A stretch of 64,000 bases of DNA, taken from the NCBI GenBank assembly GCA_047495785.1, contig JBLDXI010000081.1, positions 1 to 64,000 on the forward strand. The letters run 5' to 3'. The notes beneath the pieces are model-generated. The model did not search any database and was not told the DNA's origin. It worked only from the letters and a program-made list of their open reading frames with translations. A program made the translations under genes and the position numbers. How positions within the stretch are numbered: position 1 is the stretch's first letter; each line of letters opens with the position of its first letter. Below are positions 1-11,322 of the stretch, in pieces. Source of the DNA: Lepidodermella squamata (taxonomy: Eukaryota; Animalia; Gastrotricha).

Positions 1-732
1 ACACATCTCGTGAGAGTTTGAGAAGTGGAAAAGAAAAGACTGAACTTAGGATGAGCTGGCATCTCGAAAAGCTGTTTCCTATAGTCATCGGCCTGCTGAG
101 CATACAAACCATTGTCTCATCGGAGGAAGATATCATTTAGGCATGATATTTTAACAACATTTATTTAAAAAAATGCGTGATGCGCGCGATGTCTTCTTAT
201 TCAGCCAGCGCAACTAAAACGAATAAGATAAAGCCATGAGGCGTGGCTAGCAGATGAATATCGCGAATTACGTCGGCAGTTGGCAGGAAATCATTGCCTG
301 CTAGCTTAGACTTAGCGATTAGAACTGGCATCATTACAATCAAACGAAATCGAACTGGCTCATATCCTCAGAAAATAATCGATTTCTGCGAGTTTTCTCA
401 TAACCACTCTACCGTAGTTCTACCGTATGCGATCTTATTGTGGAGATCGAAAATGCGTTGGAATGAATTATGAGCGTCTGAAAAAATGTCTCGTGTCGGA
501 CGATGAAAATTCAAACGTTCAGGACTGCGGAGGAATTGAGCGTACTTTCTGCCCCGTACCCCCAATTTATAAAAATAAAACTTAACAAATAATGAATAAA
601 TTGTTCTTTAATGGTTCTATAGAACTGCAACAATCATGACCTACATAAAGTTCTCTTTCATCTGTCGTCTGAATTTAGTTTAACCATTAGCTGTTTGCAA
701 GCCACGCATTGTTATTACCGAGTCCTTGTAAT

Positions 733-2301
733 TTATTTGTACGGGTAAGGACATTGTGCGGGGTAGTAAGTTCCGGGGATGACACATGCAATAGTTGATT
801 GAATCCAGTTTAGGTATGGCTTGATTGTAGTCATAAGAATAGGCTTTGCCTCCCCACATGCAGAACGGTAACTGTAAATCGCATGCAGAGCCAATCGCGT
901 GTAATGATCCCCTACAGTATAGAAAGCTGGGCTTCCTTCATCGCCCGTACACGGGACACTTGTGTTAGGGCTGGCAGAAGCGCAAGCCATTGTTCCAGGT
1001 GTGAATGCGTTAGGCCACTGTTCCTTGCAAGTTTCATCACTTTTGCCAGCCAGTGAAAAGTAACGAATCATCGTGTGACTTGATAGAGGTGGACGGCCGT
1101 TAACTCCCCATCCAGCCATGAAGAGAGGTGAATCATCATAGTTGAGAGGCAAGCAAATGTCGTTGACGTATAGGTTAGACATGTCAATCGGCTGAGTTAG
1201 TTCAATCAGTGCAATGTCGTTGAAAATCATTCCTCGGAAATTGGTATAGTTTGGGTGCAAGACAATATCCCTTACTGTATGTGTTTTTCGGAAATGCGGA
1301 CTAGTAAGAAGGTCATATTCGCCAACATTAAGCCAGTATTTCAGAGGATTAGCGGAACTTTTGAAACAGCTTGCTGTTGTTAACGCCCAATAATTGCCAA
1401 TGATGCTTGCAGAGCACACATGAGAGGCAGAATCTGACGTGGTACCCATCCGTAGGCTGGCTAAAAATGGAAACTGACCTTGTCGGGCGGATACCTGCGG
1501 AAGTAATGGTGTTGACGGGATACCGGGCAAACGAGGAGCGCCACATGGCGGAGCGGAGAGAAAGAAGCGGCAAGCATCGCGAATTCGCATAACTTCTTGA
1601 GCAGTGAGTTCCGCTGAATAAACACTGAAACACGATATAGCAAGATTAGAATTAAATCCGTATATCCATTTATCCCCTATTCCTCCTATATCGAAACCAG
1701 CATCGTTTTTGTTTCCAGCCAAGATATTGCCATTATTTGAAACATATGTAACAAGACCATATTCGTTATACATCTTAAAATCGCAGGTGTTATCAGAAAA
1801 CGTAATTGAAACAAAGTTCCATATGTTGGGATCAGTTGGGGCTTCGGCCCATTCTTGTAAGTCCCATATACTGTAATATACTTTGTAGGAGTGTGAAACC
1901 TTATGGCAATAACTTATTTCCACCGCGCCTTTCATGTTATTGGAGTTGGCGAATTTCACAATGTTGGAACACCAACTCGATCCGTAGCCATAGACAAAGA
2001 ATGAAATTGTGAATGCAGAAGTTAGCTTTATTCCACTGTTTCGGACACTCATAATGCCGCTAGAACTAGAAGATCGATACGACGAATGTGGATCTCCAAA
2101 TGGTCCGGCTGCGGTATTAACGTACGATCCACTTTTTGCCGTTCCATGGTATCCGTTTCCGCTGATGTCTTGCAACTTGTAATAGCCATTCAGAACCCAA
2201 AATCCAACCAAATCATCTGTCCGCGGCAGGTACTCAGACATTTGGCTGTATGAAGAATCACACGCCAGCAGTAGAGCGAATATGAATATGATATATTTCA
2301 T
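733..2301 (-). CDS. Secreted LamG/pentraxin-like + trypsin-like serine protease homologue (catalytically inactive), palindrome copy 1
   Basis: Signal peptide; LamG-like motifs (LVGFW..DISGNG, FTISFFV, WNFVSIT); S1 fold motifs with LTTASC (His lost), NDIALI, GDEGSP (Ser lost). Single 522-aa ORF. Confidence 0.85.
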   Translation of the reverse strand: MKYIIFIFALLLACDSSYSQMSEYLPRTDDLVGFWVLNGYYKLQDISGNGYHGTAKSGSYVNTAAGPFGDPHSSYRSSSSSGIMSVRNSGIKLTSAFTISFFVYGYGSSWCSNIVKFANSNNMKGAVEISYCHKVSHSYKVYYSIWDLQEWAEAPTDPNIWNFVSITFSDNTCDFKMYNEYGLVTYVSNNGNILAGNKNDAGFDIGGIGDKWIYGFNSNLAISCFSVYSAELTAQEVMRIRDACRFFLSAPPCGAPRLPGIPSTPLLPQVSARQGQFPFLASLRMGTTSDSASHVCSASIIGNYWALTTASCFKSSANPLKYWLNVGEYDLLTSPHFRKTHTVRDIVLHPNYTNFRGMIFNDIALIELTQPIDMSNLYVNDICLPLNYDDSPLFMAGWGVNGRPPLSSHTMIRYFSLAGKSDETCKEQWPNAFTPGTMACASASPNTSVPCTGDEGSPAFYTVGDHYTRLALHAIYSYRSACGEAKPILMTTIKPYLNWIQSTIACVIPGTYYPAQCPYPYK

Positions 2302-2551
2302 CTCAAAAATCTACCAATGAAACCGTTTCTCATATGTCGAGAACATTAAATACCAATGACACAGATATCGACAGTCGATAGAGCGAACAACAAACTGCTC
2401 TTATCAAATTTCGAATTTCATGAGAATGCTAAGGATATTTCCTTGGAAGTTGCTTATTACTATGCTGTAAAACCATTTATCATCAACTGATAAAAGCAAA
2501 AAAAACTATTGTTTTTCTTTGTGTGGGCTCATTTTTCCCACCATTAAAATA

Positions 2552-2733
2552 TCGCGGGGTGGGCGACAGAACGACCTGACTAAAATAGAAACAACTGGCG
2601 TAATGCATTTGATGCACAGAAAAAACTGGCGCTCAGTGTTTCCGGCACGCGACTGGCTTGGTCGAGATGCAAAAAATAGCTTTACGCCATTTGTATCTAT
2701 TTTAGTCAGGACTTTCTGTCGCCCACCCCGCGA
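2552..2733. mobile_element. MITE with long TIRs and TA target duplication
   Basis: TA-tcgcggggtgggcgacaga...tctgtcgcccaccccgcga-TA; related copy near 15020-15175. Confidence 0.8.
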
Positions 2734-3056
2734 TATGAGAAAGCAAAGACACATCGCATCCATTTTCATTTGATGGGTCGAGTTGCAAGAATACTGCGTG
2801 AGATTTGAAAATTGCTCACTGTGAACTAGAAAGATTAGAGACAGAATCGAGAGACAATCACATCACTCGACCAACTGTCATGCTGAATGTTGACCCCAAG
2901 TTTGATCAGAGTCTATACGACAACGTGTGTCCGGCAAAATAGCCAGAAAGTGAACACCATTTAACAATAGTTTTTATTTTTTATCTCTAAGCCAAATCCA
3001 TCAAATTATCTTCTCTGCTTGCTCATCACCATATCACTTGCGCGGCAACAATGTTG

Positions 3057-3272
3057 TTAGAAAACTCGCTTTCTGGCCCCCTCTTTAGCAGGGTCTGCGC
3101 GAGCGGCTTCCTCCGGCTCAGCTTCTTCTTGTCCAGCTGTGATTTGAAATTGTGTGATGCAGTCAATGTACGGCTGGGCTGACTCGGTATTGCTGGGAAT
3201 TTGGGCTATGCAACTCAACTGAGCAGCATTCAGCCCATCTGCCCCAGCTACGGCAGCAACTGCAACAGCAAC
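3057..3272 (-). pseudogene. Exon 2 of small secreted C-x16-C peptide gene, first exon absent (palindrome mirror)
   Basis: Mirror of 5032-5247; homologous to 20992-21189. Confidence 0.65.
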
Positions 3273-3318
3273 CTGTAAAATATACAATAGGTTCAGCGAT
3301 GAAGCGAAGTGGAAAGTC

Positions 3319-3455
3319 TTGAAAATATCTGCGATTGAATATTAAATTTTCTGAGGTTAGTATCAATACCACTCCGACTGCTGTCTATTAGAATGCGCGG
3401 CGTAAGCTTGCATTCTGCCTTGAAATATCTGCGATTGAATATTAAATTTTCTGAG
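3319..3455 (+). repeat. ~36-bp direct repeat pair upstream of the LINE ORF1-like gene
   Basis: ttgaa(a)atatctgcgattgaatattaaattttctgag at 3319 and 3420; mirrored at about 4849-4985. Confidence 0.9.
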
Positions 3456-3485
3456 ATTTGTTAAACATATTATTGAACCGAACAA

Positions 3486-4232
3486 ATGGCGAGCACGACT
3501 CTGCAAGCTAAACTGCTTAAAATGGCTGAAGACGAGGCAATTTGTGACTTGGTTAAGAAACTCGGATTTTCAGTGGCTTCGATGCTGAGTGACCTGATCT
3601 CCATCGAATCTGAAAGGAAAGACGAAATAATCACGGTATCCAAACAATATCAACAATTTGTTGACGAAGTCAAAGAAGATACTGCTTATGCGGCTGATAA
3701 CGTGATCGACTCTGTCAAACAAGCGTCCTATGAGATCAGGAATGGCGGATGCCTGATCACCGCCGTCCACGAGGCCCTTTCCCAACGGGACAGGGCGAAC
3801 AACATCGTCATCTCCGGACTGGAAGCGCCAGACGGTAATACCGTCATAGCCTTATCTGACCTGGTTGCAAATCTCGGCATCCTGAACTTCGACGTCAAAG
3901 AACGCATAATACGAACGAACCTGATCACGAGGGAAAACCAAGATCCTAAAATTATTGTGCAGCTGAAATATGCCTCCGACAAACGTCTGTTTCTGGAAAA
4001 AGCCCCCCAACTTCGCAAAAAAGCTGGGTGGGAGTCTGTGTTCATTAGCAAGGACCTGACCCCTGCTCAAGCTAAGATCGAGTTTGAAAAACGGGAGCAC
4101 AACAGACGCCAACGGACAGGGCGCCAGGTTCCTAAGGTGATGTCGGTTGAGGAGGCACCAGGTTTTTCTTTACCGGCGCACCAGTCGATCGTTGGCGTCT
4201 GTTGTGCTCCCGTTTTTCAAACTCGATCTTAG
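3486..4232 (+). mobile_element. LINE (L2/CR1/L1-type) ORF1p-like RNA-binding protein, copy reading through the palindrome loop
   Basis: Helical N-terminus followed by RANNIVISGL...IIVQL...K..FL..A..LR...VFISKDLT, typical of the ORF1 RRM/CTD region. Confidence 0.7.
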
Positions 4233-4818
4233 CTTGAGCAGGGGTCAGGTCCTTGCTAATGAACACAGACTCCCACCCAGCTTTTTTGCGAAGTTGGGGG
4301 GCTTTTTCCAGAAACAGACGTTTGTCGGAGGCATATTTCAGCTGCACAATAATTTTAGGATCTTGGTTTTCCCTCGTGATCAGGTTCGTTCGTATTATGC
4401 GTTCTTTGACGTCGAAGTTCAGGATGCCGAGATTTGCAACCAGGTCAGATAAGGCTATGACGGTATTACCGTCTGGCGCTTCCAGTCCGGAGATGACGAT
4501 GTTGTTCGCCCTGTCCCGTTGGGAAAGGGCCTCGTGGACGGCGGTGATCAGGCATCCGCCATTCCTGATCTCATAGGACGCTTGTTTGACAGAGTCGATC
4601 ACGTTATCAGCCGCATAAGCAGTATCTTCTTTGACTTCGTCAACAAATTGTTGATATTGTTTGGATACCGTGATTATTTCGTCTTTCCTTTCAGATTCGA
4701 TGGAGATCAGGTCACTCAGCATCGAAGCCACTGAAAATCCGAGTTTCTTAACCAAGTCACAAATTGCCTCGTCTTCAGCCATTTTAAGCAGTTTAGCTTG
4801 CAGAGTCGTGCTCGCCAT
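4132..4818 (-). mobile_element. LINE ORF1p-like protein (probable original copy, 228 aa)
   Basis: Same motifs; stop codon lies inside the 75-nt loop; no ORF2 follows. Confidence 0.7.
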
Positions 4819-5031
4819 TTGTTCGGTTCAATAATATGTTTAACAAATCTCAGAAAATTTAATATTCAATCGCAGATATTTCAAGGCAGAATGCAAGCTT
4901 ACGCCGCGCATTCTAATAGACAGCAGTCGGAGTGGTATTGATACTAACCTCAGAAAATTTAATATTCAATCGCAGATATTTTCAAGACTTTCCACTTCGC
5001 TTCATCGCTGAACCTATTGTATATTTTACAG

Positions 5032-5247
5032 GTTGCTGTTGCAGTTGCTGCCGTAGCTGGGGCAGATGGGCTGAATGCTGCTCAGTTGAGTTGCATAGCC
5101 CAAATTCCCAGCAATACCGAGTCAGCCCAGCCGTACATTGACTGCATCACACAATTTCAAATCACAGCTGGACAAGAAGAAGCTGAGCCGGAGGAAGCCG
5201 CTCGCGCAGACCCTGCTAAAGAGGGGGCCAGAAAGCGAGTTTTCTAA
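5032..5247 (+). pseudogene. Exon 2 of small secreted C-x16-C peptide gene, exon 1 displaced by the LINE-like sequence
   Basis: Acceptor ttttacag at 5031; near-identical peptide to 20992-21189; upstream homology ends near 4987. Confidence 0.65.
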
Positions 5248-5570
5248 CAACATTGTTGCCGCGCAAGTGATATGGTGATGAGCAAGCAGAGAAGATAATT
5301 TGATGGATTTGGCTTAGAGATAAAAAATAAAAACTATTGTTAAATGGTGTTCACTTTCTGGCTATTTTGCCGGACACACGTTGTCGTATAGACTCTGATC
5401 AAACTTGGGGTCAACATTCAGCATGACAGTTGGTCGAGTGATGTGATTGTCTCTCGATTCTGTCTCTAATCTTTCTAGTTCACAGTGAGCAATTTTCAAA
5501 TCTCACGCAGTATTCTTGCAACTCGACCCATCAAATGAAAATGGATGCGATGTGTCTTTGCTTTCTCATA

Positions 5571-5752
5571 TCGCGGGGTGGGCGACAGAAAGTCCTGACT
5601 AAAATAGATACAAATGGCGTAAAGCTATTTTTTGCATCTCGACCAAGCCAGTCGCGTGCCGGAAACACTGAGCGCCAGTTTTTTCTGTGCATCAAATGCA
5701 TTACGCCAGTTGTTTCTATTTTAGTCAGGTCGTTCTGTCGCCCACCCCGCGA
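5571..5752. mobile_element. MITE (palindrome mirror of 2552-2733)
   Basis: Same TIRs and TA flanks. Confidence 0.8.
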
Positions 5753-6002
5753 TATTTTAATGGTGGGAAAAATGAGCCCACACAAAGAAAAACAATAGTT
5801 TTTTTTGCTTTTATCAGTTGATGATAAATGGTTTTACAGCATAGTAATAAGCAACTTCCAAGGAAATATCCTTAGCATTCTCATGAAATTCGAAATTTGA
5901 TAAGAGCAGTTTGTTGTTCGCTCTATCGACTGTCGATATCTGTGTCATTGGTATTTAATGTTCTCGACATATGAGAAACGGTTTCATTGGTAGATTTTTG
6001 AG

Positions 6003-7571
6003 ATGAAATATATCATATTCATATTCGCTCTACTGCTGGCGTGTGATTCTTCATACAGCCAAATGTCTGAGTACCTGCCGCGGACAGATGATTTGGTTGG
6101 ATTTTGGGTTCTGAATGGCTATTACAAGTTGCAAGACATCAGCGGAAACGGATACCATGGAACGGCAAAAAGTGGATCGTACGTTAATACCGCAGCCGGA
6201 CCATTTGGAGATCCACATTCGTCGTATCGATCTTCTAGTTCTAGCGGCATTATGAGTGTCCGAAACAGTGGAATAAAGCTAACTTCTGCATTCACAATTT
6301 CATTCTTTGTCTATGGCTACGGATCGAGTTGGTGTTCCAACATTGTGAAATTCGCCAACTCCAATAACATGAAAGGCGCGGTGGAAATAAGTTATTGCCA
6401 TAAGGTTTCACACTCCTACAAAGTATATTACAGTATATGGGACTTACAAGAATGGGCCGAAGCCCCAACTGATCCCAACATATGGAACTTTGTTTCAATT
6501 ACGTTTTCTGATAACACCTGCGATTTTAAGATGTATAACGAATATGGTCTTGTTACATATGTTTCAAATAATGGCAATATCTTGGCTGGAAACAAAAACG
6601 ATGCTGGTTTCGATATAGGAGGAATAGGGGATAAATGGATATACGGATTTAATTCTAATCTTGCTATATCGTGTTTCAGTGTTTATTCAGCGGAACTCAC
6701 TGCTCAAGAAGTTATGCGAATTCGCGATGCTTGCCGCTTCTTTCTCTCCGCTCCGCCATGTGGCGCTCCTCGTTTGCCCGGTATCCCGTCAACACCATTA
6801 CTTCCGCAGGTATCCGCCCGACAAGGTCAGTTTCCATTTTTAGCCAGCCTACGGATGGGTACCACGTCAGATTCTGCCTCTCATGTGTGCTCTGCAAGCA
6901 TCATTGGCAATTATTGGGCGTTAACAACAGCAAGCTGTTTCAAAAGTTCCGCTAATCCTCTGAAATACTGGCTTAATGTTGGCGAATATGACCTTCTTAC
7001 TAGTCCGCATTTCCGAAAAACACATACAGTAAGGGATATTGTCTTGCACCCAAACTATACCAATTTCCGAGGAATGATTTTCAACGACATTGCACTGATT
7101 GAACTAACTCAGCCGATTGACATGTCTAACCTATACGTCAACGACATTTGCTTGCCTCTCAACTATGATGATTCACCTCTCTTCATGGCTGGATGGGGAG
7201 TTAACGGCCGTCCACCTCTATCAAGTCACACGATGATTCGTTACTTTTCACTGGCTGGCAAAAGTGATGAAACTTGCAAGGAACAGTGGCCTAACGCATT
7301 CACACCTGGAACAATGGCTTGCGCTTCTGCCAGCCCTAACACAAGTGTCCCGTGTACGGGCGATGAAGGAAGCCCAGCTTTCTATACTGTAGGGGATCAT
7401 TACACGCGATTGGCTCTGCATGCGATTTACAGTTACCGTTCTGCATGTGGGGAGGCAAAGCCTATTCTTATGACTACAATCAAGCCATACCTAAACTGGA
7501 TTCAATCAACTATTGCATGTGTCATCCCCGGAACTTACTACCCCGCACAATGTCCTTACCCGTACAAATAA
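6003..7571 (+). CDS. Secreted LamG/pentraxin-like + inactive trypsin-like protein, palindrome copy 2
   Basis: Identical translation to 733-2301. Confidence 0.85.
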   Translation: MKYIIFIFALLLACDSSYSQMSEYLPRTDDLVGFWVLNGYYKLQDISGNGYHGTAKSGSYVNTAAGPFGDPHSSYRSSSSSGIMSVRNSGIKLTSAFTISFFVYGYGSSWCSNIVKFANSNNMKGAVEISYCHKVSHSYKVYYSIWDLQEWAEAPTDPNIWNFVSITFSDNTCDFKMYNEYGLVTYVSNNGNILAGNKNDAGFDIGGIGDKWIYGFNSNLAISCFSVYSAELTAQEVMRIRDACRFFLSAPPCGAPRLPGIPSTPLLPQVSARQGQFPFLASLRMGTTSDSASHVCSASIIGNYWALTTASCFKSSANPLKYWLNVGEYDLLTSPHFRKTHTVRDIVLHPNYTNFRGMIFNDIALIELTQPIDMSNLYVNDICLPLNYDDSPLFMAGWGVNGRPPLSSHTMIRYFSLAGKSDETCKEQWPNAFTPGTMACASASPNTSVPCTGDEGSPAFYTVGDHYTRLALHAIYSYRSACGEAKPILMTTIKPYLNWIQSTIACVIPGTYYPAQCPYPYK

Positions 7572-8305
7572 ATTACAAGGACTCGGTAATAACAATGCGT
7601 GGCTTGCAAACAGCTAATGGTTAAACTAAATTCAGACGACAGATGAAAGAGAACTTTATGTAGGTCATGATTGTTGCAGTTCTATAGAACCATTAAAGAA
7701 CAATTTATTCATTATTTGTTAAGTTTTATTTTTATAAATTGGGGGTACGGGGCAGAAAGTACGCTCAATTCCTCCGCAGTCCTGAACGTTTGAATTTTCA
7801 TCGTCCGACACGAGACATTTTTTCAGACGCTCATAATTCATTCCAACGCATTTTCGATCTCCACAATAAGATCGCATACGGTAGAACTACGGTAGAGTGG
7901 TTATGAGAAAACTCGCAGAAATCGATTATTTTCTGAGGATATGAGCCAGTTCGATTTCGTTTGATTGTAATGATGCCAGTTCTAATCGCTAAGTCTAAGC
8001 TAGCAGGCAATGATTTCCTGCCAACTGCCGACGTAATTCGCGATATTCATCTGCTAGCCACGCCTCATGGCTTTATCTTATTCGTTTTAGTTGCGCTGGC
8101 TGAATAAGAAGACATCGCGCGCATCACGCATTTTTTTAAATAAATGTTGTTAAAATATCATGCCTAAATGATATCTTCCTCCGATGAGACAATGGTTTGT
8201 ATGCTCAGCAGGCCGATGACTATAGGAAACAGCTTTTCGAGATGCCAGCTCATCCTAAGTTCAGTCTTTTCTTTTCCACTTCTCATAAAAAACTCACTAG
8301 CTTCA

Positions 8306-8969: not shown

Positions 8970-10022
8970 ATGCCTAATTTTCCTACAATTGCAGATGCGT
9001 CTGCTGGGAATTTCTTCACCTGCCGATCAATCGCTAGCCAATTCAACTCTTGGACCTACTTCGCATTAATATTCGACCCTTCTACTGGAAAAGTGACTGC
9101 GATGTGCGACTCGGTCAGCTTCGCGGTAGTAGTACCTGTACCGAAAACGAGTACCAGAATGAGAGTCGGCCGAAGCTTCGACAACTCCATCAGCTTCCCG
9201 GGTCAAATGTCGTGCCTATCCGTATTCAAGCAAGCCCTCTCCCTTCAACAGCTATGGATTCTTCGCAGAAGATGCCTTCAGATCCACGCTGGGCAAACGT
9301 GGCCACCAGAATCTTTGAAAATTCTGATCCCCTCACACATAGGTGTTTGGCCGCTGGTTTCTGATTTATCGGATCGCGTCGATCCTATCGCTAATGCAAC
9401 ACCCCCAAACACGGAACTAGAATTGACTCGCGGCCCGTTCTACTCGGTACGCTCGGCGCTTATCTTCGACACATCGGACCCGATTGTCGTGACTTCTGAC
9501 AAGGTCAAGCTGGAAACTGGCGACTTTACCTTTGTGTTCTTCAGCCTTGGGCAAATTACTAATCTACAATTGCCTACATTAGAATATGAACCTGCCTCCT
9601 CAGGCTCAGGGCTCAAGTTCACCGTGGCCGATTCATCTTACATGGCGACGCCATATGACGGGTTTTCCGTGGCTGCCTCTTGCCTGTCAAACATGGAATG
9701 GAATTTCGTCACTACGACTTACAACTCGAATACCAGTAAAATGGCTGTTCTGTGCGACTGGAAGGGCAATCAGGGTGCGCAACTTTCATCGCGACCAATC
9801 ACTCGGACCGGTAAATTCATTCTAGGACGGTAAGCTTGACCTAATTCTACTCAAATCTCGGCTCAAATTTAAATTTAATTTATTAGGACTTGGGCTGATT
9901 ACGGCGATACGCTGCAAGGAAGTTTTGCGTGCCTCAACATTTTCACTGAAACGCTGACCCTCAACCAACAGCGTATCGTCGAAATCAACTGCGCATCTTT
10001 CTACATACCTGCCCTGTTTTGA
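8970..10022 (+). CDS. Tandem LamG/concanavalin-A-like domain protein (3' exons; 5' part not identified)
   Basis: WTYFALIFD, MRVGRS...FPGQMSCLSVFKQALS, WNFVTTTYN, FILGR|intron|..GSFACLNIFTETLT; stop at 10020-10022. Confidence 0.65.
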
Positions 10023-10362: not shown

Positions 10363-11322
10363 GCTCAATTCCGGGCCCATCGTAGTTCCGTCCGGCGCGC
10401 GCGCGTCGGTTGCGCAATTGGAGGGTAAAAGTGGACTTAACGCAAAACGCTAAGTCGAAGTTTTCATCAAATCCAGAGCCGCGCGCGCTAATGTCAAAAG
10501 ACTAGTTTAGATTTTTTGGGCGGTTTTTACACCAAAATGAAGAGGAGGCAATTCTCTATCAAATGATATATGCTTCTATCGTGATAAAATTAAAGGAAAT
10601 AATTTTTACGTGTATCTCAAGTTTTGAGAAGCGAGTGTGCGCGCTCTCAACTGGCGCGCTAAATCTAAGGTGCGCGTAAAACTTTTTTAGTTTAATTTTT
10701 TCGCGCGAGAACCCCATATTCAATCGATAGAGAATTGCCTGAATTATTTTTTGGTAAAAATACCGACGTGAAATTTGAAAGTAACCCTTTAGCATCTTCG
10801 CGCGCGGTAAAAAATTTGTTAAAAATAAGAACTTGGCTCACGCGCATCAGTATCATTGATTTTTAACATATTTAATACCGCGTGCGCTGATGTCAAAGGG
10901 CTACTTTTGAATATCTCGGCGGTTTTTATACCAAAAAATAATTCAGGCAATTCTCTATCGATTGAATATGGGGTTCTCGCGCGAAAAAATTAAACTAAAA
11001 AAGTTTTACGCGCACCTTAAATTTAGTGCGCCAGTTTATGAGCGCGCGCACTCGCTTCTCAAAAGTAAAGACGCGCGAAAACCTTCTATATTTTAGTTTT
11101 TCGCGCGAGAAACCATTTTCAATCGATAGAAAATTATTTGAATTATTTTTCGGTATAAAAACCGCCGAGATATTCAAAAGTAGCCCTTTGACATCAGCGC
11201 ACGCGACGTTAAAATTCATGAATATTTCGACTTAGCGTTTTGCGTTAAGTCCACTTTTACCCTCCAATTGCGCAACCGACGTGCGCGCGCCGGACGGAAC
11301 TACGATGGGCCCGGAATTGAGC
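10363..11322. mobile_element. Non-autonomous Mutator/foldback-like element
   Basis: ~97-bp near-perfect TIRs (gctcaattccgggcccatcg...), 9-bp TSD tgaaacttt at 10354-10362 and 11323-11331, internal inverted modules. Confidence 0.92.

Follow-up and report, generated by a model that had tools for sequence, protein, structure and literature searches.

A palindrome with 4096-nt arms at a contig start of Lepidodermella squamata is very probably a fold-back library molecule

We analyzed a window of 64,000 nucleotides from the gastrotrich Lepidodermella squamata (contig JBLDXI010000081.1 of assembly GCA_047495785.1, here C81) that opens with a gene-bearing palindrome, and asked whether both of its arms belong to the genome of the animal. 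By repeat search and direct string comparison, the two arms are perfect reverse complements of 4096 nt each, with no mismatches and no indels, separated by a 75-nt spacer. Such complementarity over this length rules out a chance origin of the repeat. The outer boundary of the palindrome is sharp, since base 18 does not match the complement of base 8286. A preliminary description had reported two 4096-bp arms around a 75-nt loop with mirrored intra-arm open reading frames (ORFs), and had proposed a base-by-base self-alignment of the arms. This geometry was borne out: the alignment is indel-free at 100% identity and all ORFs are mirrored. The features of the palindrome are listed below.

Features of the palindrome at the start of the window and the evidence for each of them
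Feature	Position	Strand	Evidence
Untrimmed SMRTbell barcode stem, bc1003 (16 nt) plus adapter T, non-genomic	1-17	+	17-mer counts, adapter identity
Unpaired base between barcode and left arm, no pairing with 8286	18	+	direct comparison
Left arm: inverted copy, judged an artefactual snap-back product on the contig's first read	19-4114	+	outer end abuts barcode
Mirror of the trypsin-like ORF, within the arm judged artefactual	733-2301	-	ORF mirroring
Mirrored pair of 84/87-aa ORFs	2506-2773 and 5531-5798		ORF list
Mirror of the MITE-like element	2549-2736		repeat search
Mirror of LINE ORF1, extending into the loop	3486-4232	+	ORF list
CAACG microhomology at the junction: last 5 nt of the left arm before the loop, native LINE as well	4110-4114	+	reverse complement of 4190-4194 (CGTTG)
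Young APE+RT LINE, 5' 773 nt: short 5' UTR and ORF1	4110-4882	-	other genomic copies
75-nt loop, native LINE: final 18 ORF1 codons, stop and part of the ORF1-ORF2 spacer	4115-4189	-	LINE colinearity
LINE ORF1, 228 aa	4132-4818	-	ORF list, other LINE copies
Right arm: native locus, running into unique sequence from 8286 on	4190-8285	+	LINE colinearity, contig continues rightward
188-bp MITE-like element, terminal inverted repeats of 58 nt	5568-5755	.	repeat search
Trypsin-like serine protease ORF, 522 aa	6003-7571	+	Pfam Trypsin PF00089, E 6.8e-28, residues 271-500

The window corresponds to C81:1-64000, and its first base is the end of the contig in a 121-Mb assembly. The proximity of the left arm to the window edge, which had been regarded as suspicious should this be a contig end, thus proved to be a justified concern. 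The margin (bases 1-18) consists of an untrimmed PacBio barcode followed by one base. The 17-mer of bases 1-17 occurs exactly 178 times in the assembly (147 forward and 31 reverse copies; a control pattern gave none), and as printed, the 3' end of the bcAd1003 adapter is identical to it (bioRxiv 10.1101/2023.02.19.526140). At least 24 contigs carry the 17-mer at their bases 1-17, and all six reverse copies that were fetched sit at the last base of their contig. About 120 of the 178 copies are internal to contigs, including one at C13:1117 that interrupts a CCCTAA telomere array. The base that follows the barcode (the 18th) differs among barcode sites. Elsewhere in the window the barcode is absent, even with up to three mismatches allowed. 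Because bases 1-17 represent the stem of the bcAd1003 adapter, C81 starts where one read starts, and because the arm begins one base after the barcode, arm length is set by the reach of that read and not by biology.

Two other origins of the margin were considered and rejected. As a noisy continuation of the palindrome, bases 1-18 align with the sequence beyond 8285 no better than random 18-mers (p ~0.18). They also share what we take to be an 8-nt resemblance to the Tn5/Nextera mosaic end; a remnant of this element would be in the wrong orientation, and the idea was abandoned after the barcode had been identified.

Among the repeats within the arms, the MITE-like element has dozens of copies genome-wide (75-94% identity), and the LINE fragment shares 99.1-99.5% identity with copies in C42, C4 (two copies) and C20. 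In all four of these copies an ORF2 follows, with Exo_endo_phos_2 and RVT_1 domains; in C81, the fold-back truncates the element 22 nt past the ORF1 stop. A run-on from 4132 into ORF2, which the preliminary description had named as grounds for refutation, is seen in these four copies, at loci other than that of C81. The loop is colinear with the four copies except for one difference, and they match the window as far as base 4110, with the left arm extending to 4114. Since the sequence from the loop through the right arm follows the native LINE colinearly, and the private variants of the C81 copy recur in the left arm, the event took place inside one molecule and did not join two LINE copies. 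The junction lies at a 5-nt inverted repeat, CAACG/CGTTG, spaced by 75 nt, for which the chance expectation is about 1 in 1000. For a native single strand ending at 4110, folding prediction places the 3' end in a paired state in both the minimum-energy and the centroid structures. The inverted repeat would thus allow snap-back self-priming within the LINE. No adapter sequence is present in the 75-nt loop.

We further searched the assembly for the locus in its unfolded form. A third, unfolded copy of the C81 arm was not found in the assembly, which contains five copies of the LINE ORF1 and four ORF2 starts, all four of the latter belonging to the other copies at internal sites. Nor was there a partner contig beginning with the remainder of the LINE, as no LINE match occurs at a contig start or at a known contig end. 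Given that no unfolded copy exists and that ORF2 starts only at the four other copies, the true continuation of the C81 locus is missing from the assembly. The paralogous region in C42, searched for an empty site or left flank, was uninformative: its homology is patchy and ends 98 nt before the LINE.

The same structure is found at other contig starts. Two of the five other barcode-led starts that were sampled, those of C4 and C7, fold back likewise. The segment C4:19-1517 is the reverse complement of C4:11458-12956, and the same DNA occurs once in C36, without an inverted partner. Similarly, C7:18-1517 is the reverse complement of C7:7182-8681 and is present as a single copy in C38. The arm is offset from the barcode by one base in C4, as in C81, and by none in C7. 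The left arm of C4 alone contains four one-base homopolymer indels, whereas the arms of C81 are free of single-read errors. C4 and C7 also differ from C81 in that their unfolded sequence is retained elsewhere in the assembly; C4 and C36, as well as C7 and C38, seem to be adjacent contigs that share redundant overlaps and were not joined. The arm length of C81 equals 2^12, for which no software cause was found; we treat it as a coincidence, since the palindrome centres in C4 and C7 lie ~6.5 and ~4.3 kb from the barcode.

Taken as a whole, these observations make it very probable that the palindrome is a fold-back library molecule carried into the contig end and that the left arm does not belong to the genome of the animal. 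A fragment of the C81 locus would have had its 3' end at 4110, inside the LINE, and the terminal five bases, CGTTG in the sense orientation of the LINE, would have snapped back and annealed to the CAACG lying 75 nt further upstream. Copying of the strand by a polymerase, back to the far end of the fragment at 8285, would then have left a hairpin-closed molecule with a single ligatable end, to which the barcoded SMRTbell adapter bc1003 would have been joined. Such a molecule would be read in the order barcode, arm, loop, arm, and the assembler may have taken this palindromic read as the first read of C81, retaining the barcode. We infer that the hairpin formed while the library was being prepared and that its read support amounts to one or very few reads. 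Speaking against this reading are the missing continuation of the locus, which a real fold-back that lost its distal portion would also predict; the virtual absence of fold-back reads from the unamplified HiFi set of PMC12870357; a junction geometry that in vivo foldback priming in yeast produces as well (PMC10622511); and arms free of single-read errors, unlike the left arm of C4. Of the two origins offered in the preliminary description, the artefact (for example, a long-read chimera) is therefore strongly supported by the contig end, the barcode, and the fold-backs in C4 and C7 with their unfolded copies, while the young or homogenised inverted amplification gained no support, the arm length being set by a read start.

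The alternatives differ in whether the fold-back existed in the animal. A real germline or clonal fold-back inversion is unlikely. In this scenario the LINE broke, the broken end was sealed through foldback priming at the 5-bp inverted repeat, and replication yielded a palindromic chromosome segment with arms exceeding the reads; the assembler would have collapsed these arms, showing only the reach of the last loop-spanning read. The short inverted repeat at the centre is comparable to that of yeast foldback inversions, long, perfect inverted duplications also occur elsewhere in this genome at a distance from contig ends, and the lack of a third arm copy, together with the excess of ORF1 copies over ORF2 starts, fits a loss of the distal part. 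However, the outer boundary is a library barcode and not genomic DNA, and at normal coverage the farthest loop-spanning read would be expected to continue beyond the loop for roughly one complete read length instead of 4.1 kb. Moreover, the twin structures in C4 and C7 coexist with unfolded copies, a palindromic and probably dicentric chromosome would be unstable (PMC10622511), and neither a telomere repeat nor another stabilising junction was seen. It is quite unlikely that the sequenced animals themselves carry the fold-back, as a palindromic chromosome end that persists at appreciable frequency with the trypsin-like gene in two inverted copies. Were this so, the break would lie within a young, probably active LINE, and of the second arm the assembler would show just the initial 4.1 kb.

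The hairpin could also have formed in vivo in a few cells, for example at a somatic break, and the capped molecule, lying outside the consensus genome, could have been captured in the library by chance. In vivo foldback priming has the same geometry (PMC10622511), the junction evidence is identical, and sequence alone cannot tell such a molecule from a library-made hairpin; yet the presence of such structures at several contig starts suggests that they stem systematically from the preparation and not from rare cellular events, which makes this origin improbable. Extremely improbable is a purely computational fold-back, caused by a SMRTbell adapter missed in the read or by an assembler that wrongly joined two inverted LINE copies. 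Palindromic PacBio reads are known to result from missed or missing adapters (PMC6218980), and the LINE is multi-copy, but the centre consists of 75 nt of native LINE without adapter or barcode, both arms share the private LINE variants and 3.4 kb of unique flank, which shows that two LINE copies were not joined, and the 5-nt microhomology points to physical priming.

It is known that assemblies can acquire artefactual inverted duplications from palindromic PacBio reads (Warris et al. 2018, PMC6218980). As in the fold-back artefact reads described there and in PMC12870357, the C81 palindrome is a false inverted duplication derived, on the preferred reading, from library preparation. Those reads are diagnosed by symmetry about the read midpoint; the C81 case was met in a finished assembly and not in reads, with its arm starting at the adapter and the untrimmed barcode marking the read start. 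The one unamplified HiFi genomic set checked by Heinz, Meyerson and Li (2026, PMC12870357) had virtually no fold-back reads, whereas the library behind C81 seems to have been unusually affected. Oxford Nanopore (ONT) fold-backs often lack a spacer (PMC12870357), in contrast to the native 75-nt loop of C81. Reads with missed or missing SMRTbell adapters likewise run down one strand and back along the other, but have the adapter or nothing at their centre, where C81 has a native stretch of 75 nt with a 5-nt microhomology.

Amplification by phi29 polymerase was also considered. Lasken and Stockwell reportedly described in 2007 that inverted chimeras of phi29 multiple displacement amplification (MDA) have junctions primed by a few complementary bases a short distance back on the displaced strand. 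C81 shares an inverted junction at short complementarity (CAACG/CGTTG, 75 nt apart), and a phi29 origin of its fold-back is possible. However, 40-50% of reads were palindromic in the amplified libraries of one study (Pacasus paper, PMC6218980), and such a proportion would probably have damaged the assembly far more.

Palindromes of the sex-chromosome type keep their identity by arm-to-arm gene conversion, lie between unique sequences and persist stably from one generation to the next. The C81 palindrome is likewise gene-bearing, with near-identical arms and a short spacer; unlike them, it has no genomic sequence to the left of its left arm and ends in the barcode at the contig end. Biological foldback inversions and breakage-fusion-bridge events (PMC10622511; Marotta et al. 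2013, PMC3834830) use the same chemistry, in which a 3' end self-anneals at a short inverted repeat and is extended. In yeast, foldback priming in vivo made use of a repeat of 5 bp whose copies were separated by 35 bp (Al-Zain et al. 2023, PMC10622511), and the 5-bp repeat of C81 with its spacer of tens of nucleotides matches this pattern, but the second arm of C81 ends at a library barcode and is not joined to other genomic DNA.

The palindrome consequently carries little biological weight: the copies of the trypsin-like gene, the MITE and the LINE ORF1 at 19-4114 should be left out of gene counts and not be taken for a duplication. The finding matters mainly for quality control, as the public assembly retains all 178 barcode stem copies and at least three of its contig starts (C81, C4 and C7) are very probably fold-back reads. 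Before a biological reading is given to any other palindrome of this genome, its surroundings should be inspected for a barcode or a contig end.

Repeat search and direct string comparison bore out the palindrome that the preliminary description had recognized from the sequence alone. Its two arms are 4096 nt long, free of indels and 100% reverse-complementary (19-4114 versus 4190-8285), the ORFs of one arm are mirrored in the other, and the loop between them spans 75 nt (4115-4189). The outer boundary is sharp, base 18 being unpaired with 8286, and base 1 of the window is the first base of contig C81, one of 151 contigs in the 121-Mb assembly. The MITE-like element found in each arm has dozens of relatives on many contigs at 75-94% identity. 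Gene density in the window is low, and neither tRNA nor Rfam matches were found in its 64 kb; its content is that of an animal, one with a small genome and judged not to be human. Outside the palindrome, a Laminin_G_3-like ORF (8970-9833) has just to its right a nest of inverted repeats (10363-11322), with arms of 61-178 nt that are 75-91% complementary.

Features of the palindrome, LINE copies, barcode sites and overlapping contig regions (bare coordinates are window positions, C-numbers are contigs of the assembly)
Feature	Location	Remarks
Trypsin-like ORF, 522 aa	one per arm	Pfam Trypsin, E 6.8e-28
MITE-like element, 188 bp	5568-5755, mirror 2549-2736	one per arm; 58-nt terminal inverted repeats
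First 773 nt of LINE	4110-4882 in window	inner end of each arm
LINE ORF1, 228 aa	4818 to 4132	minus strand
LINE copies other than the window's	C42:1.390 Mb; C4:0.455 and 0.539 Mb; C20:3.092 Mb	
Contigs with 17-mer at bases 1-17	C2, C4, C5, C7, C9, C10, C16, C20, C22, C29, C31, C32, C34, C35, C43, C46, C52, C54, C57, C61, C64, C66, C81, C109	
Internal 17-mer examples	C13:1117-1133, C1:2059199, C2:2911641, C4:2247014	
Internal barcode sites with abutting inverted repeat	C3:3656455, C4:1626148, C9:3484710, C12:785111, C14:162058, C15:2646197	
Overlapping contig regions	C4:1-12956 with C36:1863-5460; C7:1-8681 with C38:10159-11658	

The possibility that bases 1-18 are a noisy continuation of the palindrome was rejected (p about 0.18). 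Across the assembly these 18 bases match at 190 places when up to two mismatches are allowed, compared with 2-4 for a control pattern, and the exact 17-mer ACACATCTCGTGAGAGT occurs 178 times (147 forward, 31 reverse) versus 0 for the control, the chance expectation being ~0.01. At least 24 contigs begin with it (bases 1-17), followed by a variable 18th base, and all six reverse copies fetched sit at the very end of their contig. The 3' end of the PacBio hairpin adapter bcAd1003 is the barcode ACACATCTCGTGAGAG followed by T (bioRxiv 10.1101/2023.02.19.526140), a barcode also in use as the PacBio-style 'bc3' (PMC11480859). Bases 1-17 of C81 are identical to the printed adapter end; thus, C81 starts at the start of one PacBio read. 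The reach of this read fixes the arm length, and therefore the figure of 4096 nt is without biological meaning.

About 120 of the 178 copies of the 17-mer lie inside contigs, and the one at C13:1117-1133 breaks a CCCTAA telomere array. Among 30 copies fetched, the internal ones were all forward (18/18) and the sole reverse ones were the six at contig ends. From these orientations we infer a layout in which every read supplies the prefix from its own 5' end and the final read is retained in full. The copies are adapter contamination of the released assembly. At six of the 18 internal sites, one arm of an inverted repeat (61-372 nt, 94-100% identity) lies 0-3 nt from the barcode, so that read starts coincide with hairpin boundaries; these repeats either occur naturally and were cut at the loop, or they represent short ends formed by snap-back.

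The inner ends of the arms fall within a young LINE that shares 99.1-99.5% identity over 4110-4882 with copies on C42, C4 (two) and C20. Past the position matching 4110, these four copies continue uninterrupted into an ORF2 with endonuclease (APE) and reverse-transcriptase (RT) domains. The element is ~3.75 kb long, with an ORF2 of ~926 aa; three of the copies are full-length, and in the C20 copy ORF2 is cut off after 289 nt. No Pfam match was obtained for ORF1. Several 5'-truncated copies at 98-100% identity are also present, and the family is accordingly probably still active. A second, older LINE family is present at ~75% identity.

The native LINE aligns colinearly with the loop and the right arm, so the right arm represents the original sequence, and the left arm is its copy. 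Private variants of the C81 LINE copy are present in both arms, and the unique part of the arm has no match elsewhere in the genome; both observations place the fold-back within the single C81 locus. A join of two LINE copies is ruled out on the same grounds. The native LINE match stops at 4110 and the arm extends to 4114, where CAACG (4110-4114) is the reverse complement of CGTTG (4190-4194), a microhomology of 5 nt that about one junction in a thousand would show by chance. In both the minimum-energy and centroid structures of a native single strand ending at 4110, the 3' end is predicted to pair with the 4190-4194 site, and this pairing is prolonged by ten further pairs in an interrupted stem; the overall folding energy of the strand is not unusual (z -0.85). 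In vivo foldback priming in yeast also uses a 5-bp repeat and a spacer of tens of nucleotides (PMC10622511), thus the junction alone cannot separate the test tube from the cell.

We propose that, in a fragment of the C81 locus, the LINE sense strand had 4110 as its 3' terminus. This terminus would fold over and anneal to the 5-nt complement lying 75 nt upstream, and extension to the 5' end of the fragment at 8285 would yield a hairpin-closed molecule. Adapter ligation would then be possible only at the open end, and the polymerase would read barcode, arm, loop and arm in that order. Placed in a string graph, this read would connect a unitig with the reverse complement of that unitig and become the terminal read of the contig, with its barcode kept. 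Perfect arm identity would be expected, because both arms would come from one strand and be corrected with the same reads. The C81 palindrome would then be a case of the fold-back (palindromic) artefact already known from long reads, a source of spurious inverted duplications in assemblies (PMC12870357, PMC6218980). The native sequence at its centre rules out the missed-adapter subtype. Its mechanism resembles foldback priming at a DNA end, for which a library enzyme is a likelier agent than the cell.

Five other contig starts led by the barcode were sampled (C4, C7, C10, C2 and C5). C4:19-1517 is the reverse complement of C4:11458-12956, with a symmetry centre near 6.49 kb, and a third copy of this arm lies at C36:2462-3960 without an inverted partner in C36. 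Over the C4 right arm and the adjoining 599 nt of outer flank, C36 is 99.9% identical to C4. Relative to both of its counterparts, the C4 left arm has four one-base indels in homopolymers, the signature of a single read that escaped correction. At the C7 start, C7:18-1517 and C7:7182-8681 are reverse complements of each other around a centre near 4.35 kb, and the arm is also present as a single copy at C38:10159-11658. As the C4 and C7 starts share the structure of C81, fold-back contig starts are recurrent in this assembly, and the redundant contig, where present, shows the unfolded path. The pairs C4/C36 and C7/C38 probably represent neighbouring pieces that the assembly did not join, so that several kb are present in duplicate. 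In C10 an inverted copy occurs 4.7 kb from the start, but because this sequence belongs to a multi-copy repeat, the case is ambiguous. The repeat (C10:18-1517), a very young mobile element, has 15 or more additional copies at ~100% identity, spread over 10 contigs. No fold-back was seen at the C2 start. C5 starts within an rDNA array (18S and 5.8S by Rfam), whose unit repeats every 8,460 nt in C5:1-18437 and fills many small contigs (C53, C91, C111, C89, C79, C52, C69).

Away from contig ends, C4:450511-460999 and C4:533511-543999 form an inverted match of 10,489 nt that is 100% identical, without mismatch or gap, and contains a full-length young LINE. The match reaches both ends of the compared sequence, hence its true length is greater, and its symmetry centre would fall near C4:497,255. 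No barcode was found in 2 x 15 kb around it. It represents either a genuine inverted duplication of large size or an assembly fold-back on a larger scale.

A real fold-back inversion in the genome is, in our estimation, highly improbable, despite several observations in its favour. With distal loss it predicts the five ORF1 copies versus four ORF2 starts seen in the assembly; an ORF2 start for the C81 continuation was not found, the assembly matching only at the four other loci. Unlike C4 and C7, C81 has no third, unfolded arm copy in the assembly, and an origin in the library needs the neighbouring piece to have been left unassembled or filtered out. The HiFi genomic data examined by Heinz et al. 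contained almost no fold-back reads (PMC12870357), which does not fit such an origin. However, the outer boundary of the palindrome is an adapter, and at ordinary coverage the farthest loop-spanning read across a real inversion would be expected to extend for roughly one read length rather than 4.1 kb. In the twin cases, C4 and C7, the fold-back is demonstrably not the sole path; moreover, palindromic fold-back chromosomes are unstable (PMC10622511).

The palindrome is thus very likely not a real genomic feature. The preliminary description had proposed either a young or homogenised inverted amplification or an artefact, and the latter is supported by the barcode at the contig start and by the fold-backs at the C4 and C7 starts with unfolded copies in C36 and C38. 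The main worth of the finding is as a quality warning for this assembly.
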